Shown here one piece after another: positions 14,310 through 55,915 of a DNA stretch of 64,000 nucleotides (positions within the stretch are counted from its first letter, which is position 1; the number at the start of each line of letters is the position of its first letter). The position numbers were made by a program, and so were the translations under genes. The stretch is from Takakia lepidozioides (Eukaryota; Plantae; Bryophyta). Below the pieces are notes generated by a model. It made no database searches. It saw nothing but the letters and a program-made list of their open reading frames with translations, and had not been told where the DNA came from. The DNA is taken from contig CM060733.1 of NCBI GenBank assembly GCA_030704615.1, forward strand, positions 7,502,001 to 7,566,000, read 5' to 3'.

Positions 14310-14575
14310 TCAAGTGGAATCCCCACAAGAACAAACGCCGTCTTGGAAGTAGTGAAAATGGCTGGCATCCTGTACAACAATAGCTTGTCCACCAATCTTT
14401 GAGACGAATCTGATAGTAACATGACAAGTCATCGATGAGGTGAAGAGGCGTCCCAGGGGCTGTGTTGATGAGCCCAAAAGTGCCAGCTTCTCACTGCGGA
14501 GGCAAAGAGAAACTGACTTTTGATTGTCCCCCAGATTATGCAATACCAAGCGGGGTGTCAGGCAAGTACCCAGTT
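14310..14575 (-). pseudogene. Degenerate E+/DYW domain remnant
   Basis: Across frameshifts reads [73 protein letters not shown]. The catalytic HxE His is lost and the CxxC is truncated. Confidence 0.85.
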
Positions 14576-14752: not shown

Positions 14753-17472
14753 TCACCAGTAATCCCCACAGGAACAACCCCCATTTTCAAAGTGGTGAAA
14801 ACGGTTGGCATCCCGTACAATGATTGCTCGCCCAACAATCTTTGAGATGAACTTGGTAGCCGTGTGGCAGTCACCACACACCCGAAGGTTTTTGATGATG
14901 CGGAGAGGCCTCCCAGGGGGTGTGCTTATTAGGCCAAAAGCAATGGCCAGCCTCTCGCTGTGGTAGCACAGGGAAAATTCCTTATGCTGCTCCTCTACAT
15001 CGTGCAATACAAAGCGTGTGTCAGGCACATACCCAGCCTCCTTCATCTGCCCATACAATCTCTTCAGTTCGACATGGATATCCTCAATTTGGGGATGCAA
15101 TTTGTCGTCTACAACAAATGTGTGCACCTCGTTGTCTACCTCAATGCAGCAGCTGCCCGGTGCCTTTCTGAAACCTCTGTCCTCCATCATTTTCCTCACC
15201 TTTGCTGTATCCTCCCACCTGCCAGCAGCAGCATAAATGTTTGACAGCAGCACATAAGTTGCCCCGTCTTGTGGATCCATCTTGAGAAGGCATTTTGCTG
15301 CACGTTCTGCTACATCCACATTGCCATGGATACCGCAGGCACTAAGCAAAGTACCCCACATTGCAGCATCTGGTTTGATTGGCATTTTGATAATGAGGTC
15401 TTCTGCCTCATCCAATCGCCCTGTGCGGCCAAGAAGGCCCACCATGCAGCCAAAATGTTCCACTGTCGGAGTGAGGCCATGGTTTCGACACATGGAATCA
15501 AAGTAGTGACAGCCTTCATCCACTAGGCCCACATGGCTACATGCAGAGAGAAGACCTACAAAGGTGATCCTGTCTGGCCTTACACCTTCCTGTTGCATCT
15601 GTTCAAATAGTTGCAGGGCTTCCATGCCATACCCATGCTGAGCATATCCTGTGATCATTGCACTCCATGAGATTACATCTCGTTCAGCCATATTGTCAAA
15701 CACCTTACCTGCATCCTTCATACTCCCACATTTAGCATACATGTCAACAAGGGCAGTCTCCAGAATGATATCTGGCGGAATTCCAGTTTTGATGATGTCA
15801 CCATGGACCTCTTTGCCGTGCTCCAGGGCTGCCATGCTAGCACACGCATTGAGAACAGAAATGAATGTGACCTTGTCAGGTGGCACCTCTCGCCACATCA
15901 TCTGCTCATACATTGCCAAAGCCTCCCTACCACACCCATGCCGAGTACATCCTGCGATCATGGCATTCCATGACACCACATTGGGTTTCAAGCCTTCCTG
16001 TTGCATTTGTTCAAACAGTTGCAAGGCCTCCCTACCACACCAATGCTGTACATATCCTGCCATCAGCGCATTCCATGAAACCACATCCCGTTGAGGCATA
16101 TTGTCAAACACTTGACGTGCATACTTCATGCTCCCGCATTTGGCATACATGTCAACAAGGGTATTCTCTAACTTGATGTATGGTGGAATTCCAGATTTGA
16201 TGATGTCAGAATGGACATCTTTGCCCTTTTGCAGGGCTCCTAGGCTGGCGCATGCATTTAAAGCGCAGATGAAGGTGACTTTGTCACACGTCACCCCTTC
16301 ACATTGCATTTGCTCATAGACTCTGAAAGCCTCCTGAGCATGCCCATGCTTTGCATATCCTGCCATAATCATAGTCCATGAAAACACATCTCGTTTAGGC
16401 ATTTTGTCAAACACCTGATGTGCATCCACCATACTCCCACATTTCACATACATGTTGACAAGGGCATTGAGTAAGAAAATGTTTGGCTTGAATCCACTTC
16501 GGATAATGTGGGCATGCACCTGCTTTCCCTCTGCTAGGCCTTTCATCTTGATGCATTCCTGCAAGAGATAGAGATAAGTCTTGGAGTCTGCCCCAATGCA
16601 TTCTTGGTTCAAAATGTGCACTTCCATTTTCAGTTTTCCTGCATCACATAGTGTCCTCACATCCCCACCAGTGCCAAAACTGTTCTTGGTGGCTCCCTTC
16701 CTTTGTTGTATTTCCAACGCACTGGTCATGGTGCAAGTGCTTGATTCAAACACCACAGCCTGATTCAACCCTGCCAACCTGCATACCTCAAGCCTCGGTC
16801 GTTACAAACCTTGACACTCCAACGAATGTATGTCAAAGCTCCAACATACTTTTCCAAAATACATCATGGGGAAAGACTCCTTGCTCTCTATTAGCAGAAT
16901 TCTATGTTGGTTACCCTTCCCACATCACAACCAGGTTCTACAAGTTGGGAACCTGCATTACTGTCCTCGTATGCATGGACTACCAAGACCACGACTGACA
17001 ACTCTGTTTGCCTTTATGCACTCACTAAGTTAACGCCAATATCTGTGTGAACTTCCCCTTTCCGGTACCCTCCTATTGCACCCCAACACAACTTTCCTGC
17101 TCCACTATGCCTATAGGGAGAGAAGTAACTATTCCTTCAATGTAAGAAGTAAGAACTCTGCTCCTTGCAATAAGCCATGTGTGGCTCCTTGTCTCTCCAG
17201 AGAAACTACGATGACAGCACTTTGCAGAACACCCTATTGCAACTAAAGGAGAAGGAGCAGATCCCCCAGAGGTCTGCATCCCTAAAACAGAAGAGACTGC
17301 CATACTGGTAGCAGCCTGACAACCCCCTTCCACCAGGGCTCACTTCAGACTTCCACCTAGCTGCTTCCAGCTTCTCCAATTGACCATCTACCCATGCAGG
17401 TTTCTTGCAGTTATCAATCCACAATGCCAGGTTGATACTCTTGTGCTTGAAATCTGGCTCTCTGGGATTGAT
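14753..17472 (-). CDS. PLS-class PPR-E-DYW editing factor (paralog A); main exon 16759-14753, upstream OSB-PDF half-motif exon 17472-17344, possible further exons 18610-18354 and 18837/18821-18735
   Basis: P/L/S repeats, E1/E2, PG box, HSERLA...CGDC...DYW stop. Phase-0 junction GAA|GTGAGC...AATCAG|GCT is in frame with the main ORF. Confidence 0.9.
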
Positions 17473-18283: not shown

Positions 18284-19292
18284 GGCGCTATATTGAATTT
18301 GAAGCTGTAGCTTTTCTATATGCATCTAGTTGTCTGCTTCAACTTAGCATCACCGTCCTCCTCAATTGTCCCACCGTTGACAGAATTTTGTATTTTACTG
18401 CATTCCAACCTGCAGGGCTGATCGGAGCACCATTGTATCCCCTGCATTCAAAAGAGATTCCAGGCCCCAGAGAGGCTGAACTTCCAAACGAGCAGATGCA
18501 CGTCATTGGTTCAAACATAACTCCTTTGATTTTGAAGGTCTTGTTATTACTTGAACAACAATGCGCTCCTTGCCTGCTGATACGGACTTCGCAAAAGCGC
18601 TGTACATAATCTGGAGTTGGAGGAACATGGCCAGCCCTGGGTCCTTTGTCCTTTCCTTTGAGCTTTTGCGCTCCCCAGAAGCCACAACATTCTCGACAAG
18701 TGAATCGGGGTAACGCTTTTATGAACGTACACACCTGCCGTATCTAACCCCACTCCATACTTTTTATAGTCAATCACGAAGTCAAAGCTGGTGATGGAGT
18801 ATAAGGTCGGTAAAATCCCACCTTTGCAGGGAAACATCCAACCATTTTGCCCAAGTGGAAGGACTAGAACCAACCAGCTGTGCTTGTGCCACGCACGAAC
18901 TATGGAGATTTCTACGACGGAGGGAGGGAGGAAGGAGAGGAGTAACGATTTTCAGGAACCAGAATTCACAGTGGTTTAAAGTTCAGGAGTTAGCAGACCG
19001 AGGTGGATTGCCCTTGCCAGCGCCTATTCTCCGCCCCATCGAATTGCGACAGGAGGACGTTGAAGACCGATTGGAAGAGCGTTACCATAGGGCTTCGAAT
19101 TCTGCTCGGCTGCAGTGATGCACATGATGAGCTGTGGTAAAGCAAAGGAGGTGATGGGCTTTGCGAGGGTTGAAGGGTGAGGAGAGGAGCGACAAAAGTC
19201 TTAGCTCAGGTGCTTGAAGTCAGGTGACGGTGGAGGAGGAAGCTAGACGTAGGGGAGTGGATTGTGTTGGAGGGGCCGCATAAACAGTAGCT

Positions 19293-19946
19293 ATGGCAGG
19301 GGACATGTTGCGGGGTCTTCAGGCCGCAGCATGTGTGTGTGGAGTTGGGGTGGTCTTAGGACTGGCAACGTTCGAATGGCTTCCACACCACATGAAGTTT
19401 TGGGGCGGAGACCTGCCTCGGATCATAGGGATGATGTTAATTCCACTTGTGGGGGTGGCCATGTCTCTGCTGTTGGCACTAGTTTCAAGTTGTGATCCTC
19501 TTATGGTTTCTCAGTCGTCCTCTTCTCGAGCTGCGGTCGCGGCTGTGGTGGCGTTACCCAGCTTTCTCGCATTACCACTCCATATCATCATCCTTTGGGC
19601 CAGCCTCAGTAATCACGTCATCGGAATAACCCCACTCACGGTGCTCACAGGGGTGCTCTTGATTTGCTTGGCAGTTGTTTTCAACTACGTGGAGCAGAAT
19701 TACGTGGTGGGGATTCGGGATCTTTGGACACTGCGGAGTGCAGAAGTCTGGGAGAAGACTCACTCCTTTGCTTCCAAGCTCTTTGCGCTGGTGGGTGTAG
19801 CAGGTATTGTGCTCGCCTGGTTTGTTCCACAGGGCATGTGGCAGCTCTTGTTGATAGCTGGCCTGCTCTTACTTCCCACTGGAATTTCTGTCATTTACTC
19901 ATATCTTATTAGGGAGGATACCCAGTATCAATACATCATAAGGTAA
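19293..19946 (+). CDS. sdpI: SdpI/YhfL-family (DUF1648 + SdpI) polytopic membrane protein, single exon
   Basis: 217 aa with about 6 hydrophobic segments. NYVVGIRDLWTLRSAEVWEKTHSFASKLF matches the SdpI hallmark N..vGIRTpWTL.s..vW.kTHr..gk. Also N-terminal LP..M..W and DP elements and C-terminal VIYSY. Confidence 0.82.
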   Translation: MAGDMLRGLQAAACVCGVGVVLGLATFEWLPHHMKFWGGDLPRIIGMMLIPLVGVAMSLLLALVSSCDPLMVSQSSSSRAAVAAVVALPSFLALPLHIIILWASLSNHVIGITPLTVLTGVLLICLAVVFNYVEQNYVVGIRDLWTLRSAEVWEKTHSFASKLFALVGVAGIVLAWFVPQGMWQLLLIAGLLLLPTGISVIYSYLIREDTQYQYIIR

Positions 19947-21715: not shown

Positions 21716-23541
21716 ATGGCAAAGATTGGGGAGGGGGATAAGCGGTGGATAGTGGAAGACCGATCTGATGGAACGAACGTGCATAACTGGCACTGGTCGG
21801 AGAAAGACTGTCTAGAGTGGACGAGGAAGCGCCTCGGCCAGCTCCTGGAGAACACGTCCATCCTGTCAGGAGAGGGAGGCCTCTGGATCACTATCGGGAA
21901 AGTGGAGAGCGTGACGGGAGAAGCTTATGTCAATATTAGAAAGGGAAAAATCATCCCTGGGTATGAGATCAATGTGCGGCTGTCTTGGACGGGCGAGGCA
22001 AAGGACGGTAGTGGAAACAGTGTGGCCAAAGTTGAGGGCGGTGTGGATCTACCTTACATTGCTGATGAGAATGCGGACGAGGAACCGGAATTGAAGGTGT
22101 CCGTGAAGGATGAAACCCCTGTGGGGCAGCGGCTCCGTGAAGCATTTCTTGCCAAAGGCAAACCGGTGGTGCTGGAGAAGGTGGCTCGATATGTGAAGGA
22201 CATGGCGGCTGGAGGGCCCGCGAAAGATGAACTGGAGGGGAAAGTGAACTCCAAAAGCAGTACAGGAAAGTCTGGCAAAGGAGGCGTTGCAGAGAAGCCG
22301 ATTGTCACGTCAACAGTACCAGAACCACCAAAACCTAAAGGCAAAGAGGGGTTTAGAACCATTTCCTTAATCGAGAGATTTCATTGCCGACCCCGGGATA
22401 TCTATTCTACTCTCTTAGATGAAAAAAGATGGAAGGGGTTCACCCAGAGCAATGCCAAAATTAGCAACGAGGTCGGAGGGGCTTTCTCCATATTTGATGG
22501 GGCCGTGACGGGAGTCAATATGCAGCTTCAAGAAGACAAGCTCATTGTGCAAAAATGGAGATTCGGAAGTTGGCCTGATGGCCATTACTCGAATGTTAGT
22601 AGTATTCCTCTCTTGCGCCTTTACTGAAAGTAGTTTACCAATGTGGAAGTGCCTTTGAAAAGTTTCTATTGGTATTTCTAGGGCGCTCACTTAGCTAAAC
22701 GTCAGTGTTCTAAGATAAAGCACCTTCCATGCGCAAGGTCAGGACTGATTTCTTGGAAGGTGGCTTACGAGCAGCAGGCACACCTGCAGTTAGCTGGGGG
22801 GAAGGGGAGGGGGTCTTTGGGTTTAGGTTAAGTTTTCATCAATTGTTTATGTAGGGGAAGGATTCCCACCTCCGATCCCTACCGTTGGACCTTCATCCGC
22901 CTTAACAATTTAACCCTCGGACTGCGGCCCTTGGGGCAGTTCCTCAAGCTGGGGAACATCCTGTTTGATCGAAACATTCCCATACACAGAACAACTGGAG
23001 GATAAAGTGGACCTGATAGTAGTGGGACTTCTTGTCTGTTAGCCTGTTGTCCCTGCACATGGCCTTGCTCTTCTCTTACCATAATTTCAGTAGGTGAACA
23101 TGGCAGTTATGAACTAATTTTCTTTAAGGAGAAAGGTTCAAAACACACTGCTCAAAGTAGCTGGAGTTTCTGGAAACCTGAAACCGGAAATGGGAGAACC
23201 CTTCTTTAGCGGTGACCTGCTTCTCGGTGGCGCTGACCTTTACTTATCAACTGTATGGGCAGGTTTGTTTGACAATTGAGGAACCAGACATTGGAGTGAC
23301 AGTTGTGAAGCTGACACAGACTGATGTTCCAGAGGAAGACAGGTGAGCAAACGACCAAGTCTTTTTCCTAGCATCAGTATGCTTCTCAGACCTTGTTCTC
23401 TCTTTCACACGTGACCCCTAAACAAGTATGGCTGGATTCATGTGCAGGTTTGGCAATTCAACCGTGGTAGAGAACACAGAGAGGGGATGGCGGGATCTGA
23501 TCTTTCACAAAATCCGGGCTGTTTTTGGTTACGGGCTATAG
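21716..23541 (+). CDS. AHA1: Activator of Hsp90 ATPase (Aha1_N + AHSA1/SRPBCC); exons 21716-22594, 23263-23342, 23448-23541
   Basis: MAKIGEGDKRWIVEDRSDGTNVHNWHWSEKDC, NIRKGKIIPGYE, LIVQKWRFGSWPDG, DVPEEDRFGNSTVVENTERGWRDLIFHKIRAVFG. Confidence 0.96.
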
Positions 23542-28335: not shown

Positions 28336-31007
28336 ATTTGTTTTTTTCCATGAATTTATTGAGTAGTAATATATCCAATCATTATTGATATATCTCCTGT
28401 CGAGGCTCCAAGCATTGTCCCAAGAAAGCCCACTTTGCCATTTTTTACCAATTTCCAACGACGAAAAGTACTTAAAATTCGACATCTCCTACACCGCAAG
28501 TCCCAAAATCATGAGACCAAGCCGGTGCACCCCTCCTCATCGAGGGCTTTCCAACAGTACCAAGCACCAGGGCTGGGGCCTTGCAGTTTGGGACATCTCA
28601 ACTCTACAAAACAAACAAAACAAATGTCTCGATTCATATATTGATATGGCTACCAAAAATTTACATACCAGAAAACCACGTGTGTCATCGAAGATAAAAA
28701 AAAATACAACCCACCCTCCCCTAGGCCTCCATGGCTTGCTAGTTTGGGGGGGGGGATTTAGCACATAGTGATAAAGATAAAGTTTCTCTTAAATCCAGTG
28801 AATTTACAGAGCCTACTGTTCAACACGCAGGCCATCAAGGGCCCAATGGACTTGTAAATGAACTTGCAACGGCAAAGTGACAGAGAGAGAAGACTCAGCT
28901 AGTAACTAACAGCCACTTTGCTTTGGGGGTGACAAAAGTGATACCAGCATGTCGTCTGTAAATTGAGGTTGGTAGTTGTTCACTCCTTATCCTTAGTACG
29001 AAATAGGTCACTTGACATTGAAGGGTGATTATAACCTTATATCATGTTGTTTGTTTGAGATCATACTACCTCCTAGTGTGACACTCGCTTCCAATAAAGG
29101 CCCATTCTGTTCAATGTTAATACAGACTAATATTGGATCATGGATGGTAATTGGATTGTTTGATTAGTTCGAGTTCTTTCCCCCCTTGTACGCACTTTTG
29201 AGAAAAACATCTAGGGGGGGCACTCCGAAAATCCTGCAACTACCATAGGCAGGGCCTTATCTTTCCCAGGGCAAAATGTGGAATCTTGAAACCAGGCGAT
29301 TACACGTGGGGACATCCCCATTATTACAAAGGAAATTTCAGCCAATGTTTTGCGATTTAGTCAATATTGGCATGCAATTTTGAAGTGCTATACAAGAATC
29401 TGGAATCTGGATCTGGATGCCCCACAAAATCTCCAAGATGGTGCACTTTTGTTGGCTTCTCTTTATTCACATCCCAGCGAAAAATGGCTTAGCACCTATT
29501 GTGCCTTCTCCAGGTGTCACCTCTACCTGCTTTGCATAAAACTACTTCCATGATGTGCCTTTTCATGATTTGCCTTGTCAAGGTTACACCTACCTCACAT
29601 GACATCTCTATTATTGAACATAGACAATAAGTGGATATTCAAGTTTATTGGCTCTGTCCCTTCAGGGCAGAGCATGTTGAAGTCAATGGAGAAAATCTGG
29701 TCAACGGACCTTACACCATGTCAAGAGTTGGTCTACAAAAGCTCTTTAGTATAAACCATGTTGCAGCTTGCCTCTCGCAATTTGCGGCTTGTTATTGATG
29801 AGAGTAGATTCTACTATTCACAAGGAGGAGCCTAGTCGCTTGTTCCATATGTATGGATTTCAAAGGCACAGCTAACTGTCAAGGGCACTCTACACCATAT
29901 GCACTTCCAGCTTTGATATACTGAACCTCTTTGCCCTTGTCCAAAACTATCAGGCTGACACATGTAGGGTGAGATCAAAAGAATATGACATTCCCTGTGC
30001 CACTATGTAGAACCACTTGGACTATGCGGGTTCTGCACCAGGGTACCGAGCTCCTTGCAAAACACCCCCCCCCCACCGGCTTCCCTTCCATGCGTGGTTC
30101 CATGTGCATAGCAACTGCCGATTATGCATGTATGCATAACTGTAACCGGCCGGGTATACTCCTGCCTCACCATACCCTACTAACACTGGTTGATACCTGG
30201 TGCAGAACTTCAGAACCGCTCAACACTAGCAATTACAGCTCACCAACCTCCATCATATACATTGTTTTTTGTTTTGAAGGAGCGGCTGAGACCAACTGCA
30301 GGGCCACGCGGACATGTGACTTGATCAGCACTGGCACCGGCTTTCCAGGACACTAGCAGTCTGGCCAATTGTTTCATACATGCTCCCAAATCTGGTCTCG
30401 AACTGCAATTGTGTTCTGAAGTGGGTGGAGTAGGTGGAGACTCTCCCCTAACCTGAACTCCACCATGCACAAACTGCAATTCATGCCACATCAATCAATA
30501 ACCGAATACCCACCGCAGTCACTATGCGAACTTTCAAGTGGCCGCCATGGGTTAGTTCTTGGTGGCTTAAAGCTAGCTTCGACGACATTCATGCAAGTTA
30601 GTCAAGGGCTCTATCTGAAGCAGCACCATGAGAAACATACAAACATGTCCAAATTTAAGATGCTGAACAAACTTGTGCACAGGGCTGCCCCTCTAATTCA
30701 TTATGAATCGTATTGACTTCCATCTTCAAGCTTTGGAGAAGCTCCACCACCCACCCCAGAATTAGGACCACACTCTGATTTCCTTCCACTATCACCAGAG
30801 TCAGTTTCAAAATCCCCTCTACCTGCTCCAGTCAAGTGCAATTATGAGCTGACTCCCACCTATGCTGGGTAGACCCCACTATCCCCCAGGAAATGCCATC
30901 AACAGTACATCATGGTCAATATTCTCAAGAAATGGTGGATGAACTGAGTAGCTACACAGATCAATGAATGAAGCAAGACACTCGCACCTTTCCAGAAAAC
31001 CATCATT

Positions 31008-34000
31008 TCACCAGTAATCCCCACAGGAACAGACCCCATCTTCAAAGTGGTGAAAGTGGTTAGCGTCCCGTACAACAATTGCCAACAATCTTTGAGGTGA
31101 ACTTGGTGGAGGTGTGGCATTCACCATACACCCGAAGCTTCTTGATGAGACGGAGAGCCGTCCTAGGGCCAGTGCTGATCAGCCCAAAACCAATGGCCAG
31201 TTTCTCACTGTGGTGGCAAAGAGAACTCCTCCCCCACATCATGCAATACGAAGTGCTCGTCAGGCACATACCTGGCCTCCTTCATCTGCCCAGACAATCT
31301 TCTTAGCTCAGCATGGATTTCCTTAAGTTCGGGATGCAATTTGTCATCTACAACAAAGGTGTGCACTCTGTTGCCAACCTCAATCCAGCAGCGACCTGGT
31401 TTCTTTCTAACCACCCTGACCTTCATCAATTTCTCACCTTTGCACTCTAGTTGTACCTGCCAGCTGAGGCATAGATGTTTGATAGCAACACATAAGTCGC
31501 GGCATCCTGTTCATCCCTTCGAGAATAGATGTTGCCACACGTTCAGCCATCTCCACATTGCCATGGATTCTGCAGGCACCAAGCAAGGCCTTCCACACCA
31601 CAACATCTGGTTTGATTGGCATTCTACTAATGAGGTCCTCTGCCTCATCCAATTGCCCTGCACGTCCAAGGAGGTCCACCATGCAGCCAAAGTGCTTTAC
31701 TGTCGGGGTGACACCATGATCTTCACTCAGGGAATCGAAGTAGCGTCTTCCTTCATCCAGTAGGCCAGCGTGGCTGCATGCAGAGAGGACACATATAAAG
31801 GCGATACTGTCCGGCTTCAAGCCTTCCTTTTGCATTCCTTCAAATATTTGCAGGGCCTCCCTATGACAACCATGCTGGGTATATGCTGCGATCATCGCAT
31901 TCCAGGACACCACATCTCGTCCGGCCATGCTGTCGAACACTCCCTTTGCATCCTCAATGCATCCACATTTGGCATACATGTCCACGAGGGTACAGTTCAG
32001 AATGACATCTGGTACAATTCCAGCTTTGACAATGTCACCATGGACCTCTTTGCCCTTTTCCAGGGCTGCCAGGCTCGCACACGCATTGCAAACACAAACA
32101 AATGTGATGTGGTCAGGCTTCACCCCTTCCCGCATCATTTGCTCATAGGTCTCCAAAGCCTCCATCCCACGCCCCTGCTGTGCATATCCTGCAATCATCG
32201 CATTCCACGACACCACATCTCGTTCAGCCATATTGTCGAACACTCCCTTTGCATCCTCAAGGCTCCGACATTTGGCATACATGTCCACCAGGGCAGTGTT
32301 CAGAATGACATCTGGTACAATTCCAGCTTTGACGATGTCACCATGGACCTCTTTGCCCTTTTCCAGGGCTGCCAGGCTTGCACATGCCTTGCAAATGCAA
32401 GCAAATGTGATGTGGCTCGGCTTCACCCCTTCCTGCACCATTTGCTCATAGGTCTCCAAAGCCTCCATCCCGCGCCCCTGCTGTGCATATCCTGCAATCA
32501 TTGCGTTCCAGGACACCACATCTCGTTCATCCATATTGTCAAACACTCCCTTTGCATCCTCGATGCACCCACATTTGGAATACATGTCCACCAGGGTGCT
32601 GTTCAGAATGACATCTGGTACAATTCCAGCTTTGACAATGGCACCATGGACCTCTTTGCCCTTTTCCAGGGCTGCCAGGCTCGCACATGCATTGCAAACG
32701 CAAACAAACGTGATGTGGTTGGGCTTCACCCCTTCCCGCACCATTTGCTCATAGGTCTCCAAAGCCTCCATCCCACGCCCCTGCTGTGCATATCCTGCAA
32801 TCATCGCGCTCCATGACACCACATTTCGTTCGGCCATATTGTCAAAAACTCCCTTTGCATCCTCAATGCACCCACATTTGGCATACATGTCCACCAGGGT
32901 ACTGTTCAGAATGACATCTGGTACAATTCCAGCTTTGACGATGTCACCATGGACCTCTTTGCCCTTTTCCAGGGCTGCCAGGCTCGCACATGCATTGCAA
33001 ATGCAAACAAATGTGACGTGGTTGGGCTTCACCCCTTCCCGCACCATTTGCTCATAGGTCTCCAAAGCCTCCATCCCACGCCCCTGCTGTGCATATCCTG
33101 CAATCATCGTGCTCCATGACACCACATTTCGTTCGGCCATATTGTCAAACACTCCCTTTGCATCCTCAATGCACCCACATTTGGCATACATGTCCACCAG
33201 GGTACTGTTCAGAATGACATCTGGTACAATTCCAGCTTTGACGATGTCACCATGGACCTCTTTGCCCTTTTCCAGGGCTGCCAGGCTCGCACATGCATTG
33301 CAAATGGAAACAAATGTGATGTGGTTGGGCTTCACCCCTTCCCGCACCATTTGCTCATAGGTCTCCAAAGCCTCCATCCCACGCCCCTGCTGTGCATATC
33401 CTGCAATCATCGTGCTCCATGACACCACATTTCGTTCGGCCATATTGTCGAACACTCCCTTTGCATCCTCAATGCACCCACATTTGGAATACATGTCCAC
33501 AAGAGTACTGTTCAGAATGACATCTGGTACAATTCCAGCTTTGACGATGTCACCGTGGACCTCTTTGCCCTTTTCCAGGGCTGCCAGGCTTGCACACGCA
33601 TTGCAAATGCAAACAAACGTGATGTGGTTGGGCTTCACCCCTTCCCGCATCATTTGCTCATAGGTCTCCAAAGCATTCCTACCACACCCATGCTTGGTAA
33701 ATCCTGCCATCATTATATTCCACGTGACCAAACATCGTTTAGGCATTCTGTTGAACACTTGGTGAGCATCCATGATGCTCCCACACTTAACATACATGTT
33801 GACAAGGGTGTTGTGTAGAAAAACGTTTGGCTTGAATCCAGTTTGGATAATGTGAGCGTGCACCTGCTTTCCAGCTTCCAGGCCTTTTATCTTGATGCAC
33901 TTATGCAAGAGACAGACATAAGTATCTGTCTCTGCTGAAATGCCTCCTTGGTTTAAAGTCTGTAGAGCCTCTTTCAGTCGCCCTGCCTCACAGAGCATCC

Positions 34001-36394
34001 TCGCATGCCCAGAAGAGGCATTGTTGACTCCCTCCCTTGGTCCTCTTTGGGAAGCTGTGGTCATGGTTGAGGTGCCTGATTTTATCAACGGTGCCACTGG
34101 CGCTGGTGCTTCCACTACCCATGCAGGTTTCTTGTAGCTATCAGTCCACAGGGAATCATGGGTAATCTTGTGCTTGAAATCCGGCCCTCTTGGATGAATC
34201 TGGACCCACACTCTATCCCTGCTCCTTCAGCTATCCCTGCCTCTGAACAAATCATGCATACGTTCTCCCCTTGCTGCTAGCAGCTGACAATGACAGCCTA
34301 GATTTCTTCTAGCAAACAACCCAACCCTACCTATCACACTAGTTCCTATTCTGAACTGCGTTTGTTTCCTAACAGGCATTCACCTTTTTGCATCGATTGT
34401 CCCACCATTGACTGGGGTTGGAAAAATATTCATTCCAAAGCTCCTCATCTCTGTTATCTGTTTTTGGATACTTTCCTGTTGCCACATTGGCAGTAACATG
34501 TCAAAATCACTCCAAACCACCATAGATCCACCCGATGAGCTAACTTGCAGAATTCAACCTGAAAAAATAGGGACGGATCAGATAAGAGGGCAAAACAGCC
34601 TGAAATGTGATGAAGAAGGTGCTTCATTAGCAGTGCCTGAATTGATCAATTGTGCTGCCACCGCCGCTGCTTCCAGTTGACCATCTACCCATGCAGGTTT
34701 CTTGTCGCTATCAATCCACAGGGAATCATAGGCAATCTTGTGCTTGAAATTTGGTCCTCTTGGGTGAATCTGGACCCAAACTCTATCCCTACTCCTTCAG
34801 CTATCCCTGCCTCTGCACCAGTCATGTAAAGATCCTCGCCTTGCTGCTAGCAGCTGACTATGACAGCCTAGATTTGTTCTAGCAAACACCCCCACCCTAC
34901 TTATCATGCACTAGTTCGTATGCTGAATTGCTCCCAGGACTTTAAAAATGTGCTGGGGAGATGACAATTTCCAGCTAACCTTTGCATTGCATCTTGTTGT
35001 CTGCTTGTCTCTGTAATCTAACAGACATTCACCTTTTTGCCTCAATTGTCCCACCATTGACAGGGGTCGGACTCCAGAGCTTCTCCTTGTCTCTGCTAGC
35101 TGGTTTTGGAGATTTTCCTGCTGCCACATTGGCAGTAACAGTGAAAATCACTCCAAACCATCACATATCCACCCAGTGAGCTTACTTGCAGAATTCAACA
35201 CAAAAATTTACAGACAACTCTGATAAGAGAGCAAAACAGGCTGAAACGTGTTGGAGAAGAAGGTGCCCTCACCAAATCGTCCTTGATCTTGTGTTGTGAA
35301 AGCAGCTAGCTTCTCTTTCAACCATGGAGGATTCAACCGACCATCAACCCAAAAGGACCTCTTGTGTGTGCTGCATATGTCTGTAGTCAGGTGATCTCGG
35401 ATTGGTCTGTGAGGAGAACCGCGACGGTGCAGCTGAGCAGCCATAGATTTAAACTCGGTCTCCTAAGAGCTTGACCCTCCAAGTACCGTGTAAACACCAG
35501 GAAAATTACCAAATCATGATACTAACACGAAGAACCCACATTTGCAGGATGGACAAGCTTCTTCACATCGTACATTAAGAAAGCCACACCTTGCGGCTGC
35601 GTTTGTCCCACCATTGAGAAGGATGTTTGACAAACTCGTGCCAGCTCTCCTCCATGCTCCACAGTAGACCTTAGTGCCCGAACATCCCACACCATCAAAT
35701 TTTTGACAATTCCCTTATGGAGGAGTGCTAGCGAGCTTTCCACGACATTCATGCAAGTCGCTTCGAGCTCGATTGGACTCTACACAATGAGGAACATTCG
35801 AACATGTCCAAACTTACACATATGAAAAACCAGCTTACATGTGTGGTCTAGAGATTTTGCAGTGGCATGTGAAAACGACCAGGGAGCAGCTGAGCAGCCA
35901 CAGTCTCAACCCTCCCAAGTACCTTATAAACTCCAGGTCAAGACCTTGTGCATCCTAATACGCAATACGGACAGTAAAAGCAGTTTCTGCAGAACAAAAT
36001 GAGATTCTGACTTCACTCAACAGCCGTATAATCCAGTCCACACTATACGATCATACCAGAGTTCAGTCAAACTCCCTTTCTCATCCTACATGAAGAAAGC
36101 TCACCTTACCGAGGCTACTGTCCCACCACTGTGAAGGACCTTCAAAGAAGTCATGCCAGCACAGTTTTTTCATGCTCCAGCGTAGACCTACACGCCAGAC
36201 ATACCAATTATCGGCCTTGCCTACCGATCCTTCGCGCTTTCTTGCTTCTTTAAAGCAAAACTCCGAGCCTGGATCGGATCTCACACACACAACAACACAC
36301 AACAACACAGCGACCCCACAAAAAAGGAGACCGCGAAGTGTTTCGTGTCCTTACCTAATTTGAATGGCATCCCTGAAGGCGCCATGGCCACCAT
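31008..36394 (-). pseudogene. OSB-PDF(x3-4)-PLS-PPR-E-DYW chimera (paralog B); PPR array still open (34199-31434), E/DYW tail and most upstream PDF exons disrupted
   Basis: PDF half-motif exons at 36268-36105, ~35660-35590, 35406-35273, 35120-35033, 34769-~34629, 34478-34384 and 34199 onward. The ORF shifts frame after ILEG. The tail has further frameshifts, an in-frame TAG, RVCGDC changed to RVYGEC, and ends GDYW* at 31008. Confidence 0.88.
31850..33720 (-). repeat. 303-bp tandem repeat (one L-S-P triplet, 101 aa) x ~6, near-identical at the DNA level
   Basis: ALEKGKEVHG occurs six times. Shadow ORFs start at 32233, 32536 and 32839, and at 33109 and 33412, each step exactly 303 bp. Confidence 0.95.
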
Positions 36395-36806
36395 TCGCAA
36401 CAGACTCCGTCTCACCGAGCTCTCTGAAGGGATGCTCCACAGCCGCGATGAAGAGACAGTTCCCTACTATGTGGAACGGGCCGGGTCCCTTGTAATGTGC
36501 TGGCCGAGGATTTCTGGGAAGCCGTTCTACAGCATCAGAGCTGAGGTGGCAGCTTGAACAGCCGATTCGGGATGCAGAATCGGCCGCCGTCCGTGGAACG
36601 GCCTCCTCTCTAGATTGCGCCACGTAATCATGTGTGAACTTTAAGGAGCCAATAAAACTAGGGTCTCATTCAGGCCGGCAATAAGAGAAAGAATCCCCTT
36701 TCTTTCTTTTTTTTCTTTTTTTTCAAAATTTTAAAGGGAAACACCTGGGACTCTGGGAGCGACAGCTCACAAATCAGGCCCATTGATAGTGAGGGGAGAA
36801 AATAAC

Positions 36807-42091: not shown

Positions 42092-44521
42092 TCAGCAGTT
42101 TTGAGTCTCCTGGTCCAGCATTGCAGGCTCCCATATATGGAGAGCTTTGTCATAAAAGGAGCAAGTGGCTACCAGACTTCTCAAACCCCTGGTCCTATCT
42201 TCCTTGCCCATACATTTCTCCCTGCTCTCCTTTGAAACTCTTGCATTCTGCATGTCATCTCTCTCCTCAACTATCAGCAGTTCATCCCTCTCACAACTTA
42301 CATCTCCTCCAGCTGGGGGGTCCTTTCCACTCCGAAATGGTTCAAGGTATTGTGTTAAAGACACAGCAACTGTACAGTTCTCAGGATCTGATATGCTGCT
42401 GCCAGTGCATCTTGTAGAATCCGCCGTATTTCCCCAGTTGCCTTTATACCAATCAGCACCATAAGCCAGGGATTCATGCCCCTTGTATTCTTCAACCACT
42501 TTCATTCCCTCTCCGTCAACACTGATGATAGCGAAACCATTATGCATACAGGCAGCTAGCACGAGACTCCTATCAAAGGGGTGCCATTTCAGTCTCCAAA
42601 CCCCACCACCTAACCCCAACTCAATCTTCAAAAGAGGACTTTGGATCATTCTCATATCCCACAGCCTGAGACTCTCATCATAACTCCCTGTCACAGTAAT
42701 GTGCTCATGCTGTGGGTTGCTCTGCACACTGCAAACGCCCATCTGGTGGGAGTTTTTATTTCGAAAAATGGGAGAATACGAGTCTTCTCTCAAATCCCAC
42801 CCACAGAAATGGCAATCATCTGCCCCACTGTACAACAAGTTGGGTTGCCGAGTGTCATAGGAAGTGGTCCAAGTTTCAAACCCATGCGCCCGCCAGCTCA
42901 TTGTCACCACAGGGTCTGATTGTCCCACATCCATGACACTAATTGAACCATCAGAGTGGCTCACAGCTATTTGAGACTCAGAGGACACTGGGCTCCAGTC
43001 GAGAGAGAGACACATCGAGGAATCAACCTCCAGCATTGCTGTCTCATGGAGTGCAAGCCCATTACCTGCATAACCTGCAGGTCAACTATTTCTGATTCAA
43101 TTGTGCTACTTGACCTGCTCAGCATTCTTCAAGCAAGTTCTGGTGAATCTCCTAGAAGCCACTAGTCACAATTTCTGGCTAAAAATGACAAAAACATACA
43201 TCAATTCGGGCTGGAGAAAGCTGTTGGTTGCAATGTTGAAGCTGGAATTAGGCCACTAACGAGCTGCATGGGATCTCACTTCATCCAGGTGTTCGACCAC
43301 TCAACGACTGGGATAGCATCCCACAATCTAATGAATCTTGTTCCTATATGTTGTGCATTTTGTGTTTGATGAAACTTTGTATGACTTTATTTACAACATG
43401 TACAATGGGTGAATGTACATAGGATTGTGAAGTTCCCAAAGAGGGGGAGGAACAAGAAGTAGGAGGAAGAAAACAAGCTATAGTAAGCTACTCAACCAGA
43501 ACGACCCTCCCAGCCAACAGCCTGGAGGAGATCAGGCACAGAGATAGGCAAAGTGTCAGGCATAGGCGGAAATGAGATGATGCGGAGCCAGCCACATCAG
43601 CCTGATGCAAAATAGATATGGCTTGTGCTCTTTGTAGCACAACTGAAACATGTTGTCGATAGTATGCCACAAGGACGGAGGCATGCAGAATGCCAATGGA
43701 CTTGCTCTACGCTGCATGATGTGCACATGTCCGAAGGAAGTCGTCGAAGTGCCTATGCAAGGAGCCAAATATCTCGACCGCCAGCGGAAGAAATCCATCG
43801 GTGCATATACCCAGCATCCCGAGCGGATATGTTACCTTGCGCAGCTACCACACCGGGCACGGCAGAAGTTGTTGCAGCTCAGGCCAAGGAGCGCAACTAT
43901 AGAGATCTTCACCCCACCGACGGATTTCTTCAGTTGCGCTGCAGAGAGCACAAGCCATATCTATTTTGCGTTGGGCCGATGTGGCTGGCTCCGCATCATC
44001 TCATCTTCCGCCTATACATGACACTTTGCCTATTTCTTTGCCTAATCTCCTCCAAGCTGTTGGCTAGGAGGGTCGTTGTGGTTGAGTAGCTTACTATAGC
44101 TTTTGTTTCCTTCCTCTTACTCATGGTTCATCCTCGGCTTTTGGGAAGTGTTTCCTAAAACGTAGAAGTAAAAGAAGAAGAAGGTGAAGAATGAAGAGGG
44201 GTAGGCACATGCATCACCTTCACGTAATGCGTATAGGTGAACAGTGCCATCAGCGCTCGCCTGTCCAAGGCATGGAGATATGCTGCCCTCTGAAAGCTTC
44301 CATTTGATATCGAAAATTCCCGAAGTCTCAGTATACTGCAGTCGCTCGAGGGCCTCCAAGCTTTCATCAACGGAAAAGAGATAGAGGCCGCCCACGCGTG
44401 TAGGGGTAGGGCCTTCCTGCAGAGTGTAGGAAGCCGCCGCCAGGACATGCAAATAAGGAGGGGTGCTACAGAACTCAACTGCATCTGCATTCCCCTCAAG
44501 CTCCGTGCACAATGGTGCCAT
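42092..44521 (-). CDS. DPH7: Diphthine methylesterase / WDR85 WD40 protein; exons 44521-44218, 43074-42092
   Basis: NADAVEFC, ASYTL, GIFDIKW, MCLSLDW, AHGFETW, TGSYDE, GGGVWRLKWHP, LAACMHNGF, HESLAYGADW, ATCSFYD. Phase-1 intron is compatible. Confidence 0.93.
43463..44116. mobile_element. Two head-to-head 3' fragments of a CRE-like (restriction-endonuclease-type) non-LTR retrotransposon forming a ~185-bp-arm inverted repeat in the DPH7 intron
   Basis: Arms ~43463-43646 and ~43929-44116 are reverse complements. Translations AQAKERNYRDLHPTDGFL and DGFLPLAVEIFGSLH...YRQHVSVVLQRAQAISIL resemble the K..KY...F.P.a.Et.G...S..LQR.nA C-terminus of CRE elements. Confidence 0.72.
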
Positions 44522-45493: not shown

Positions 45494-48400
45494 ATGGGCC
45501 AACTTGATGTGCTGGCTATTGGAGACCACCCACTTGTCCTCATGAGAGGAGTGGCAAATGCATTTGGCAATCGAGGTGAAGAAGGAGCAGCCATGACAGC
45601 GATAGTGTATGCATGGCATTTGTGGGGAGCATACCTGCCTTCTTCTCCACATGCTCTCGAGGCATCTCGGGGTGCCTTGACAAGCCTCCCCGAGTCTATG
45701 GTGCTTGCAAGCCTGGCACTGCTCAAAGCTTCAAGAAGGCCTGGGCTCGACAATCTGGACGCTCTTCTGTGTTTCCCTGATTGCATTGCATTGAGATTCG
45801 TTTCAAATAGTTTCAATCCAATTGTGGGACAGTGGAGACGAATTGTGGAGGAGAAGGTTTATAAACAGGAGAATGAGGAAGGAGGGAACTTTGAGAGGCC
45901 ATGTCGGCCTGTGGTGACATTCAGCAAGGAAGCTGCCAATACAGACACATATCCCAATCTCGAAATTCCAGACCTGGAGAAGCTTTGGATCGAATATACT
46001 CCAAAACCCCTACAATGCTGGGACACTATATGCAGTAAGGTGAATATCTGCTATGTTACAGCAGAGGCAGAGAACGACATGCATGGGAAAACTTTCGCGC
46101 AGTATTGATAGCACCCAACAACACATACACACAGTCTCTCTCCGTTTTCTGAAGTCTTGCCACCAATGCTGTATTTGGATCCATTGTTTTGGACGGAGGG
46201 ATGGGGGGTTTTCTCTGTAAATATGGGCTGTCATGTCCAGCTACTGATATCTAATGGAGGCAGGGGTGGAGTGTGGGTGCAGATCAAAGGATCGAATTTT
46301 GAGCACAAGAGTACCGACGAGGCATTGACGATGACTAGCTACGAGAAACATGTGTGGGTAGCTGCGCAATTGGAGAATCTGGAAGCAGCTAGTCAAAATT
46401 CTGTGGTGAGCCCTAGTGGACAGGAATCATCAGGCAGCTTACAGTATGACAGTCCCACTCTTTTACAGATTGAGACCTCCGCGAGTGCTGATTCTTCTTT
46501 GTTTGTTGCGTGGGTGTTCTAATTGGTTCTCTTATCATGATTTTCATGAGGGAGACAGTGAAGCACCTGTTGCTTATGGCTAGGAGCACATCTTGAATGA
46601 GAGGCATTTACTTCTCTGCCTTAGGCCGAAACGGAGCAGAAATGGTGTGAGTGGGCGGGTGCACCAAGAGCTACACATCTTGAATGAGGGGACATCTACT
46701 TCTCTGTCTTAGACAGAAATGTTGTGAATTGGCGGGTGCACCAATTTTTCAAGTGTGGAAGTGATCACAGTTATCAGAAGCGATTCTTAATCCGTGCATA
46801 AATGCACACTAATGGTCTTGCCCCTGGTGCTCAAGTTGGCAATGTTTTCAAATGTTTGTTCTGTGATGTGGAAGGGTAATCAACAAGAAAAATCTTGTTA
46901 ATATATAGCAAGGAGCTGGTCCTCAGGAAGACTTCTTTCTAGATGCATGTAGGAGGATGTAATTTCTTGGGGTTAGGGTTTGACGGTTTGTAACTAGGAG
47001 TTTGGAGTCATGCAGGATTGTTGGGTGGAAACAGGCACAGTTGTGTGAATCATCTACCTCCACCATGTCCACTGCTTTTGAAAGAGGACCAACGGAGGGA
47101 GTCAACAAAAACTATTCTGGCACTCATGGGGATATCAGGACACTATGTAAGGCAGGACATCTAAAAGAGGCACTGCATATTTTGAACCAAGGATGTATTC
47201 TGGCAGACTCCAACACTTACACCTTCGTGTTGCAGGAATGTGTTAAGAGTAAAAGCCTAGCAGAAGGAAAGCAGGTGCATGCTCACCTTATCCGAAGTGG
47301 ATTCAAGCCGGATGTCTCCCTACTTAACGCCCTTGTCAACATGTATGCCAAGTGTGGAAGTGTGGTTGATGCACGCTTAGTGTTTGACAAAATGACTGAA
47401 CGTGATATGTTCACCTGGAATATACTGCTGGCAGGATATGCCAAGCATGGTTGTGGTAGGGAGGCCTTAAAGATGTATGAGCAAATGATACAGGAACGGG
47501 TGACTCCAAACAGGGTCACGTTCATTTGTGTTCTCAAGGCATGTGCGAGCCTGGGAGACTTGGAAAAGGGCAAACAGGTGCAAGCTGAGGTAGTCAAATA
47601 TGGAATTGCACCAGATATCATTGTGGAGACTGCCCTTGCTGCCATGTATGCTAAATGTGGGAACATGAAGGATGCTCATGAAGTCTTTGACAATATGGCT
47701 AAACGAAATGTGGTATCATGGAGTGTGATGATTGCAGGATACGCCAAACGTGGGTATGGTAGGGAGGCTTTGTTGATGTATGAGCAAATGATGAGGGAAG
47801 GGGTGACCCCTGACAGGGTTACATTCATTTCTGTTCTCAATGCATGTGCCTCCCTGGCAGCCCTGGAAAAGGGCAAAGAGGTCCATGCCGCCGTCATCAA
47901 AGCTGGAATTGCCGGAGATATCATTCTGGATACTGCCCTTGCTGACATGTATGCCAAATGTGGGAGCATAAAGGATGCACACCAAGTATTTGACAATATG
48001 ACTCAACGAAATGTGTTTTCATGGAATGCGATGATCGCAGGATATGCTCAGCATGGGTACGGTGGGGAAGCCCTGCAACTACTTGACCAAATGCAAAAGG
48101 ACGGTTTGAAACCGGATGTGGTGTCATGGAACGGCCTGATTGCTGGATATACTAAACATAGGTGTGGTAGGGAGGCTTTGGCAATTTATGAGCGGATGAT
48201 ACAGGAAGGAGTGATGCCTGACAGGGTCACGTTCATTTGCATTCTCAGTGCATGTGCCAGTCTGGCAGCCCTGGGAAAGGGCAAAGAGGTCCATGCTGAC
48301 ATTATCAAAGCTGGAATTCCCCGAGATGCCATTCTGGATACTGCCCTTACTGACATGTATGCCAAATGTGGGAGCATGAAGGATGCACGTCTAGTGTTTG

Positions 48401-49752
48401 ACAATATTGCTCGAGGAGATGTAGTGTCATGGAATTCAATGATCGCAGGATATGCTCAGCATGGGTGTGGCAGGGAGGCATTGCAACTATTTGAACAAAT
48501 GCAACAGGAAGGCTTGAAGCGGGACATTTTCTCATGGAACGCTGTGATCACAGGATACTCTCAGCATGGGTTTGGTAGGGAGGCTTTGGCAATGTATGAG
48601 CAAATGGTTCGGGAACAGGTGACCCCTGACAGGGTCACATTCGTCTGTGTCCTCAATGCTTGTGCTAGCCTGGCAGCCCTGGAAACGGGCAAGGAGGTCC
48701 ATGCTGACATCATCAAAACTGGAATTCCGTCCTATGTAAATTTGGATAATACCCTTGTTGACATGTATGCCAAATGTGGGAGCATGAAGGATGCACATAA
48801 AGTGTTTGACAATATGGTTGAACGAAATGTGGTCTCATGGAGTGCAATGATTACAGGATATGCTCAGCATGGTTGTGGTAGGGAGGCCCTGCAACTCTTC
48901 GAACGAATGCAACAGGAAGGCTTAAATCCAGATGGTATCACATTCATATCTCTTCTCTCTGCATGTAGCCATGTGGGCCTAGTTGATGAAGGACACCACT
49001 ACTTCGATTCTATGAGTCGAGATCATGCCCTCACTCCGACAGTGGACCATTTTGGTTGCATGGTGGACCTTCTTGGCCGTGCAGGACGATTGGATGAGGC
49101 AGAGGACTTCATTAACCAAATGCCAATTGAACCAGATGATTCAGTGTGGCGGACTTTGCTTGGTGCCTGCAGACTTCATGACAATGTGAAGCTAGCAAAA
49201 CGTGCAGCAAAACGCCTACTCAAATTAGAACCACAGGATGCTGCAACTTATGTGCTGCTATCGAACATCTATGCTGCAGCTGGCAAGTGGAATGCCCAAG
49301 CAAGGGTGAGGAAAATGATGAAGGACAGAGGTGTCAGAAAGGTGCCAGGGCACAGCTGCATTGAGGTGGACAACAAGGTGCATACATTTGTAGTTGATGA
49401 CAGAGTGCATCCACTAATTGAGGAAATCCATGCTAGGCTGAAGAAATTATCTTGGCAGATGAAGAAGGCTGGGTATGTGCCTGACACGCGCTTTGTATTG
49501 CATGATGTGGAGGACGAGATCAAGGAATTTTCTCTCTGCTACCACAGTGAGAAGTTGGCCATTGCCTTCGGGCTCATCAGCACGCCCCCTGGGACGCCCA
49601 TCCACATCATAAAGAACCTTCGGGTGTGTGGTGACTGCCACACGGCTACCAAGTTCATTTCAAAAATTGTTAAGCGAGCAATTGTTGTTAGGGATGCCAG
49701 CCGTTTTCACCACTTCCAAGAAGGAACTTGTTCTTGTGGGGATTACTGGTGA
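45494..49752 (+). CDS. PLS-class PPR-E-DYW editing factor with an N-terminal degenerate OSB-PDF motif (paralog D); model exons 45494-46039, 46283-46405, 47035-49752 (~1128 aa)
   Basis: Intact HSEKLA...CGDC...DYW. Junctions AAG|GTGAAT, GTGCAG|ATC, GTG|GTGAGC and AAACAG|GCA are all phase 0 and give one open frame. The true 5' start is uncertain. Confidence 0.9.
46585..46745. repeat. ~85-bp tandem duplication within the paralog D intron
   Basis: CACATCTTGAATGAG...TACTTCTCTG...CAGAAATG.TGTGA.T.GGCGGGTGCACCAA occurs twice. Confidence 0.85.
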
Positions 49753-54583: not shown

Positions 54584-55915
54584 TCAGGACGAGTGCTTTG
54601 CTTGGAACGCTTTCATGTGAGAAACAAGCTTCTCAACTCCTGCCCTAGGCATAGCATTGTAAATGGAAGCTCTAACACCCCCAACCGATCGATGCCCCTT
54701 CAGCTGCACCATCCCTTGTGCGGTGGCCTCCTTCAAGAAAGCAGCTTCAAGTTCTGGCGTTTGCATGGTAAACGGAACATTCATGCACGATCGCACTGAT
54801 TTCTCCACGGGACATTTGTAAAACCCATTGCTCTCATCGATCGCATCATACAAAAGCTGCGCCTTCTCAATGTTCCTCTTCTCGATTGCCTTTAAGCCCC
54901 CCTGTGCCAAAAGATCCTCAAAAACAAGCCCACACACATAGATTGTGAAGCAGGGGGGTGTGTTGTAAAGAGACTTGTTGTCTGCATGGATTTTGTAATC
55001 GAGCATGACAGGTGACTGTGGCTGCGCATAACCAAGCAGATCCTTTCTTATGATGACTATGGCTACCCCAGCCGGACCAATGTTCTTCTGCACCCCTCCG
55101 TAGATGATTCCAAACTTGGACACATCAATCGGTTTTGAACAGAAATTAGAAGAAACGTCAGCAACCAGAATCGTCTCCTCGCCGACATTCGGATAGTCCT
55201 TGAACTCCACCCCGTGGATTGTCTCGTTTGCACAGATGTGTACGTACTTAGCCCCTGGAGAAAGCTTGATCTCTTCTTCTCTAGGCAGCCTTGTATACTT
55301 CTCTGCCTTCCCGCTCCACACCAAATTGACCTTGCAATACTTCTGGGCCTCCTTGTAGGCCTTGTCACCCCAAGACCCTGTGACGATGAAATCTGCCACA
55401 TCATCTGGCTTGCACAGATTCAGAGGAATAGCAGAAAACTGGGTGGATGCACCGCCTTGCAGGAACAAAACCTCATAGTTGTCAGGGATCTCAAGCAGTT
55501 CTCGGAAATCCGCCTCGGCTTTCTGAATAATGGACAGGAATTCCTTGCCGCGATGGCTAACCTCCATAATACTCATCCCACAGCCGCGCCAGTTAAAGAG
55601 CTCCGCCTGAGCTTGCTTCACGACGTTGGCTGGGAGGGTCGCAGGACCAGCACCGAAGTTGAAAACCCTGCCATCGTCCCTCAAGATCTCACTATCCAAC
55701 ACCTTCTGATCAGCAACAGCAGATGGCACAGTGGCAGTGCATGTGGAGACAAGGCGCTGCACCTTTCTGGTCCTCTGACCCTTGGATTGCTGCACACTCA
55801 CTCCCACAAAATTTCCTTTGAAACCAGACCTCATCTCTCTCCCAAAATCCACCTGTGGCCTTGCACCCATCTGAGCCACAGCACCCGCAGCGTGTGCTGC
55901 CATCACCGCCTCCAT
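54584..55915 (-). CDS. PSAT: Phosphoserine aminotransferase, plastid-targeted, intronless CDS
   Basis: [43 protein letters not shown] (PLP lysine), [24 protein letters not shown]. Confidence 0.97.

Follow-up and report, generated by a model that had tools for sequence, protein, structure and literature searches.

OSB-type PDF exons ahead of PLS-class PPR genes in Takakia lepidozioides

PLS-class PPR arrays recognise RNA, and the DYW domain is a deaminase that turns C into U; both are combined in the Physcomitrium editors PPR56 and PPR65, which are PLS-E-DYW proteins built from P-L-S triplets, an E/E+ region and a DYW domain with the motifs HxE and CxxC. The PDF motif belongs to the OSB proteins (OSB1-4 of Arabidopsis and the OSBs of bryophytes), in which it is C-terminal; the PDF of OSB1 is sufficient for binding single-stranded DNA (ssDNA) (PMC6963530), and OSB1 and OSB2 favour ssDNA over RNA (PMC4166229). 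Here, a stretch of 64 kb of Takakia lepidozioides DNA (assembly GCA_030704615.1, contig CM060733.1, positions 7,502,001 to 7,566,000; hereafter the window, with positions counted from its first letter) was analysed. This nuclear plant DNA holds three genes for PLS-class PPR proteins, termed G1, G2 and G3, ahead of which lie exons encoding halves of the PDF motif. The gene under study, G2 (approximately 36394 to 31009, minus strand), is a damaged PDF-PPR-DYW family member.

P-L-S triplets, E/E+ and a DYW domain with HxE and CxxC are shared with PPR56 and PPR65 by G1 and G3, and the structural model matches the PPR-DYW structure 9kfx; in contrast to the Physcomitrium editors, the window genes add an N-terminal PDF from split exons, and in G2 the E/DYW region is destroyed. 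The PDF motif itself, its tandem copies and a phase-0 intron inside it are shared with OSB. However, the PDF of the window genes is N-terminal, before the PPRs, and an SSB/OB-fold is lacking: no Pfam SSB was found in the tested exons or open reading frames (ORFs), and none was apparent in the upstream translations. A helper or nucleic-acid-binding domain in cis with editing domains is also seen in the RRM-PPR, MORF-PPR and RRM-DYW fusions (PMC13386178), although the domain differs. The extra PPR domains listed in a Physcomitrium review (RRM, LAGLIDADG, SMR, NYN, CBS and SAP) do not include PDF, PDF and OSB are absent from the text of the kingdom-wide survey of editing factors (PMC13386178), and a 2026 survey of OSBs required an OB-fold for inclusion and never mentions PPR. 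Targeted full-text searches, for which most subscription journals and the original OSB paper were out of reach, gave no paper on PDF-PPR fusions, and the PDF-PPR(-DYW) architecture is apparently undescribed, as a preliminary description of the window had supposed.

PDF exons of the window and their likeness to OSB

Intron phases were worked out by arithmetic from the coordinates and profile searches were made exon by exon. The motifs quoted in the preliminary description were all found on the minus strand of G2 where it had placed them, and are given here from 5' to 3' of the gene. The putative first exon (36358-36394), inferred from the sequence, starts at the nearest in-frame ATG before a phase-1 GT donor; the in-frame stretch upstream of it, from approximately 36630, contains three stops, and the full transit peptide therefore looks lost. 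Exon A1 (36105-36268, motif at 36161-36105), a PDF first half resembling an old, PPR-linked type, has a phase-1 acceptor and a phase-0 donor; it has lost the conserved (invariant) Arg and has no partner second half, none being recognisable between A1 and A2 by the OSB-motif profile on the six-frame window and by sequence inspection. Of the old type are A2, a first half with its core at 35590-35652, and B2 (35273-35406), a second half nearest to the PPR-linked PDF of Sphagnum and Diphasiastrum, with a 1-nucleotide (nt) frameshift and a phase-1 donor. A3 (35033-35120) is a first half with a frameshift and a TGA stop, and B3 (34650-34769) is a second half of an OSB-like type that is without the homologous phase-1 donor and reads into a stop. 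The first half A4 (34384-34475), also OSB-like, is intact, as is the start of B4 (34110-34199), a second half which continues in frame into the linker, the N-cap and the PLS-class PPR array (31520-34109; Pfam PPR matches, tandem 303-nt P-L-S units). The order of the halves is thus A1, A2, B2, A3, B3, A4, B4, and the strict alternation first described does not hold. GT donors of phase 0 are present at 36105, 35590, 35033 and 34384 and AG acceptors at 35406, 34769 and 34199, in agreement with the proposed phase-0 intron splitting the motif. The last second-half exon does run unbroken into the PLS ORF (34211-31434, minus strand), so that the phase-0 donor of A4, the phase-0 acceptor of B4 and this ORF give an intact PDF in frame with the PLS array. 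A4+B4 is the only whole one of the four G2 modules, the other three being broken or half, and an intact four-PDF array at G2 was rejected on this ground.

The identity of the exons was assessed in both directions. A PDF profile built from 88 database PDF motifs, taken from non-PPR proteins only, was run on the unspliced six-frame window and picked the exons at independent E-values (i-E) of 4e-12 to 2e-2, with the background beginning near 0.1: 4e-12 at 17472, 8e-10 at 34769, 5e-9 at 34446 and 2e-8 at 34199, with weaker values of 4e-7 at 35652, 2e-4 at 36161 and 1e-3 at 46295. Chance likeness was rejected, since these scores lie far above the window background. In the reverse search, a profile of four window second-half exons was compared with 1.84 billion representative proteins and matched 239, consisting of OSBs with Pfam SSB and of PDF-PPR fusions; Pfam SSB was present in four of ten of these proteins that were scanned, identifying the four as OSBs. 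Profile-profile comparison of the window exons with OSB PDF by hhalign gave a probability of 99.3. A phase-1 acceptor before the first half and the phase-0 intron within the motif are common to the window exons, an OSB gene on a metagenome contig (L006, likely moss), Calypogeia (L008) and Sphagnum (L009). The matches both ways, the hhalign probability and the introns shared with L006 identify the window exons as OSB-type PDF halves, as had been proposed. The PDF exons had no match in the Pfam library used; a precomputed assignment of one database protein (P0186) is to PF28390, a newer family outside that library. A homologue search with residues 1-45 of the G2 ORF gave no candidate, and nothing was confirmed in a metagenome scan with the exon-B alignment. 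A PDF-like motif is also present beyond green plants, in a chlorarachniophyte protein (Gymnochlora, P0114).

The PDF is predicted by AlphaFold (pLDDT 95) to be a small helix-hairpin-helix, both alone and joined to PPRs, and would thus be a small, separately folding module of 55 residues. This fold was matched in the ESM Atlas by one OSB cluster and three PPR/DYW clusters of 57-127 members at template-modelling (TM) scores of 0.87-0.93; feature searches in the same atlas gave nothing informative. No solved relative was found by sequence, nor by Foldseek at E<=0.001, the best VIA Z being 2.6. Two clusters of hypothetical proteins of tailed phages (199 and 187 amino acids; TM 0.75 and 0.66) and, weakly, the Rad52/22 family (TM 0.46) also match the predicted fold in the ESM Atlas. 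A phage origin of the PDF motif is possible from these modelled similarities.

Homologous exons had also been described before the other two PPR-DYW genes; the second half stands intact at G1, while the first half of G1 is broken and the G3 exons are degenerate. G1 (14753-16777, minus strand) is an intact PLS-E-DYW ORF with HxE and CxxC, preceded by a well conserved second-half exon (17344-17472), from which it is separated by an intron, and by a frameshifted first-half relic (18350-18400). G3 (47002-49752, plus strand) is likewise an intact PLS-E-DYW ORF with both catalytic motifs, HxE and CxxC; its first-half exon core (45977-46039) and second-half exon (46283-46509) are open but degenerate, with conserved residues lost. 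Candidate donors of G3 lie at 46405 (phase 0) and 46509 (phase 2), the second of which fits an acceptor at 47016, and an in-frame GT-AG path is predicted. No gene of the window joins a well-conserved whole PDF to a working DYW domain. The relic of G1 (18363 region) and A3 of G2 (35043 region) carry the same TGA at the conserved Arg codon, with 23 of 24 bases identical, which may reflect either common inheritance of an exon that was already broken or CpG decay in parallel. In G1 (16730-17344) and G3 (46405-47030) an intron, homologous between the two genes, separates the PPR exon from the second half of the PDF, and in G2 (34070-34110) and many paralogues the second half is joined directly to the PPR exon; a short similar word flanks both ends of the intron, which may thus have been lost or gained through microhomology. 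Just downstream of G1 (14318-14416) is a DYW tail that is duplicated and broken.

The PDF-PPR(-DYW) family and the origin of its modules

Proteins with both PDF and DYW, a search for which had been proposed, were found as PDF-PPR-E-DYW in Calypogeia fissa, a liverwort, where the DYW is intact, and in Diphasiastrum, where two of six PDF-PPR loci have a DYW. PDF-PPR-E proteins without DYW are present in four Sphagnum species, a PDF with PLS-PPRs in an Adiantum protein (KAI5061374.1), and PDF-PPR is also encoded by intron-free Logan contigs, one of them with three PDFs. The PDF-PPR(-DYW) family is thus real and old, occurring in liverwort, moss, lycophyte and fern, and the chimeric family described for the window stands in this respect, although G2 itself has no working deaminase and one intact PDF. 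These unnamed relatives (Calypogeia fissa P0190, Sphagnum fallax BDL97_10G099700, Diphasiastrum O6H91_18G040000, 11G100200 and 12G101800, and the Adiantum protein) are annotated merely as hypothetical or PPR proteins. They have the same architecture as the window genes, with the same intron positions in Calypogeia and Sphagnum. The Calypogeia gene runs from the PDF second half directly into the PPRs, as does G2, and the build closest to G2 is that of Diphasiastrum 12G101800, with two PDFs, a linker and an N-cap. A targeting-like N-terminus lies ahead of the PDF in the Sphagnum and Calypogeia relatives. In comparison with these relatives, the window's proximal PDFs group apart from the relatives' PDF clade and closer to OSB, and the family is hugely expanded in the genome of Takakia lepidozioides, for which 2,016 PPR genes are reported (PMC13386178).

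The window contains PDFs of two types. For the distal exons A1, A2 and B2 the closest sequences are the PDFs linked to PPRs in Sphagnum, Diphasiastrum and Calypogeia. Those closest to the proximal exons A4, B3 and B4, and to the second-half exons of G1 and G3, are PDFs of true OSBs. When A4, B3, B4 and the G1 second half were compared with the OSB exons of L006, 70-79% of nucleotides were identical (79% for A4) and the proportion of synonymous differences (pS) was 0.49-0.59, which is unsaturated, as against 53-65% and a pS of 0.70-1.16 for the fusion exons of Sphagnum and Calypogeia. In a tree of the second halves (35 columns), from which the frameshifted B2 was left out, the PDFs of Calypogeia, Sphagnum and Diphasiastrum formed a starred group without the window exons. 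Because the window has two PDF types of different age, the single ancestral OSB-PPR-DYW fusion of the preliminary description is doubtful, although one origin was not rejected by the approximately unbiased (AU) test on this short alignment (p 0.16). The sequences instead suggest repeated PDF capture, and it may be that the Takakia lineage re-acquired or overwrote its PPR-proximal module from its own OSB gene, for which the same comparisons are suggestive.

Damage to G2 and its possible products

The E/E+/DYW region of G2 (31009-31519) is broken by four frameshifting deletions of 1, 1, 11 and 5 nt near 31519, 31434, 31226 and 31083, by a TAG stop and by replacement of the first (zinc-binding) Cys of CxxC, damage on which the preliminary description was silent. 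No E or DYW domain was found in the G2 ORF by Pfam and, since E/DYW is destroyed, G2 cannot be an RNA editor. Assembly error as the cause of the breaks was rejected: the A3 lesion is also present in a DNA contig identical to the window (35032-35288, 0 differences; the sample is possibly the assembly's own), and the DYW damage, the lesions of which were not each checked singly in the reads, comprises a substitution and deletions of 5 and 11 nt.

Two DNA runs and two probable RNA runs were compared with 30900-36800 at 85% likeness, giving tens of thousands of matching read contigs. The summed depth on the PDF exons, which is not a copy number, exceeds that on the unique 5' end of G2 by about four orders of magnitude. 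The family is therefore very large, with PDF exons roughly matching the related PPR repeats in abundance, and G2 is a damaged member of this birth-and-death family. A GT-AG joint from the first-half donor at 35033 to the second-half acceptor at 34199 was found in both RNA runs (at least four and at least two contigs) and in neither DNA run, and loose ends at 35408 in RNA show a first half joined to B2; paralogues therefore splice the PDF intron. The RNA runs contain 6-14% of the sequence words and, among the matches listed, only paralogue contigs, so that the junctions proposed earlier are seen in RNA for a paralogue joint only.

G2 is either a young pseudogene or, via exon skipping, a one-PDF, deaminase-less PLS protein. 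In the second case G2 would still be a living gene for a truncated PDF-PLS protein that binds RNA, the first frameshift having removed E/DYW and the broken exons being skipped by joining A1 or A2 (phase 0) or A4 to B4, with a product that would bind or stabilise RNA or recruit a DYW partner in trans. Such a product is possible because the PLS array shows purifying selection: among five tandem 303-nt units, 91-98% identical, 19 synonymous and 23 non-synonymous changes were counted, giving a ratio of non-synonymous to synonymous rates (omega) of approximately 0.34 (naive p 0.0006), with a synonymous count inflated by transition bias. Furthermore, the approximately 2.7 kb of A4, B4 and PLS array are lesion-free, four further lesions cluster within approximately 0.5 kb past the first E/DYW frameshift (uniform-decay p approximately 0.0007-0.004), and PDF-PLS-E proteins without DYW are conserved in Sphagnum. 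However, omega downstream is still low (0.25), so that the lesions would be recent and the signal in the array may predate them; moreover, the stops at the putative first exon leave the transit peptide unclear and RNA depth is near zero over the unique 5' end. A living truncated G2 is accordingly held here only as a tentative alternative.

Two short relics follow G2 (29922-29989 and 30571-30657), one a fragment of a PPR and the other 75% similar to the A1-A2 intron of G2; they are traces of another decayed family member. The remaining neighbours comprise a transketolase C-terminal domain that is DXS-like (5298-5750), a single-ORF membrane protein head to head with G1 (19293-19946), with an SdpI/YhfL domain of a family that is mostly bacterial, Aha1 (21716-22627), a WD40 protein (42092-43036) and a class-V aminotransferase that is phosphoserine aminotransferase-like (54584-55915), together with a Helitron-like helicase and endonuclease ORF in AT-rich DNA (57529-58797) and a reverse transcriptase ORF (Pfam RVT_1) that is LTR-retrotransposon-like (62423-63406).

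Proposed role of the PDF module

The family would consist of organellar PLS-PPR(-E-DYW) editing factors with one or more N-terminal OSB-type PDF modules. The two-exon PDF cassette would have come from OSB, intron included, probably by more than one capture, a process that phase-matched exons would ease. Since the N-terminus of a PPR array faces the 5' side of the RNA site, the PDF, most likely a sequence-non-specific single-strand grip, would hold AU-rich RNA immediately 5' of the site, or ssDNA in the vicinity, and so increase the editor's local concentration or its loading. AU-rich sequence upstream of the PPR site raises the editing efficiency of PPR56 (PMC10482289). The PDF has decayed in G1 and G3 next to intact DYW domains, and because it is often lost in this way it would be helpful rather than essential. 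The reading favoured here, with some reserve, is that the PDF is an accessory helper for loading or affinity in an otherwise ordinary C-to-U RNA editor. The account as a whole, with the origin of the modules and the fate of G2, is weighed down by several observations: in the AU test (35 columns, p 0.16) a single origin for the PPR-linked PDFs was not rejected; the matches listed include no RNA contig that is identical to G2, whose unique 5' end has an RNA depth near zero; and the ssDNA preference of OSB1 and OSB2 is more in keeping with a tether to DNA than with a grip on RNA.

In the tether alternative, the PDF keeps the specificity of OSB and binds ssDNA in organellar nucleoids, at transcription bubbles or R-loops, which would keep editors beside the polymerase so that RNA is edited co-transcriptionally. 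Binding in OSBs lies in the PDF and favours ssDNA over RNA, conservation of the PDF is strong in the ancient fusion, and arrays of PDFs in tandem are found repeatedly, as they are in group III OSBs. However, single PPR-DYW proteins are reported to edit in Escherichia coli without a helper (PMC6397227), and the DYW-intact copies of the window have lost or relaxed their PDF, and a nucleoid tether is considered rather unlikely.

A simple capture of promoter and targeting exons, offered earlier as an alternative, would make the PDF a passenger of little function: PPR genes would have taken the 5' exons of an OSB gene for promoter, targeting and splice sites, with the PDF copied along and decaying. 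The family is indeed highly multi-copy, and three of the four G2 modules, the first half of G1 and the module of G3 are broken or relaxed, omega of the G3 PDF exons against their nearest copies being 0.7-0.9. The selection analysis of the exons was otherwise less permissive. Differences between copies are spread over all codon positions (4/1/3; 9/6/7), so that their third-position character was overstated at first, yet pS exceeds the corresponding non-synonymous proportion (pN) approximately 2-3 fold, pS is above pN in most exon pairs, and omega is 0.3-0.4 (few sites) outside G3. In the comparison of Sphagnum with Calypogeia, identity is 76% over the PDF and 58% over the 200 PPR residues that follow, and this greater conservation argues that the PDF is under selection in the fusion and that simple capture is unlikely for the family. 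The PPR-adjacent module also stays intact at G2, and capture seems to have occurred twice, which together leave passenger capture improbable.

Finally, that the PDF tethers the DYW deaminase to organellar ssDNA and that some members deaminate DNA itself, with targeted C-to-T changes, is very improbable, the PLS-E-DYW part being of standard RNA-editor build and many fusions being without DYW altogether, even though fusions with DYW couple a deaminase to a module that binds ssDNA, the bacterial DYW-like enzyme SsdA, a relative, is reported to deaminate ssDNA, and there is a solved structure of a designed PPR in complex with ssDNA (PDB 5orq); if true, such members would link the expansion of editing factors to organellar genome mutation.

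The interest of G2 lies chiefly in its record of deaminase loss and of PDFs captured in two generations. On the favoured reading of the PDF as a helper, the 55-residue module may serve as an add-on for engineered PPR editors, and its fusion would link the organellar DNA-maintenance and RNA-editing machineries. To our knowledge, seedless plants carry out heavy RNA editing without the MORF helpers of seed plants, and an ancient, conserved and apparently repeatedly recruited single-strand module is a testable candidate for the affinity of their editors, or for access to their targets.

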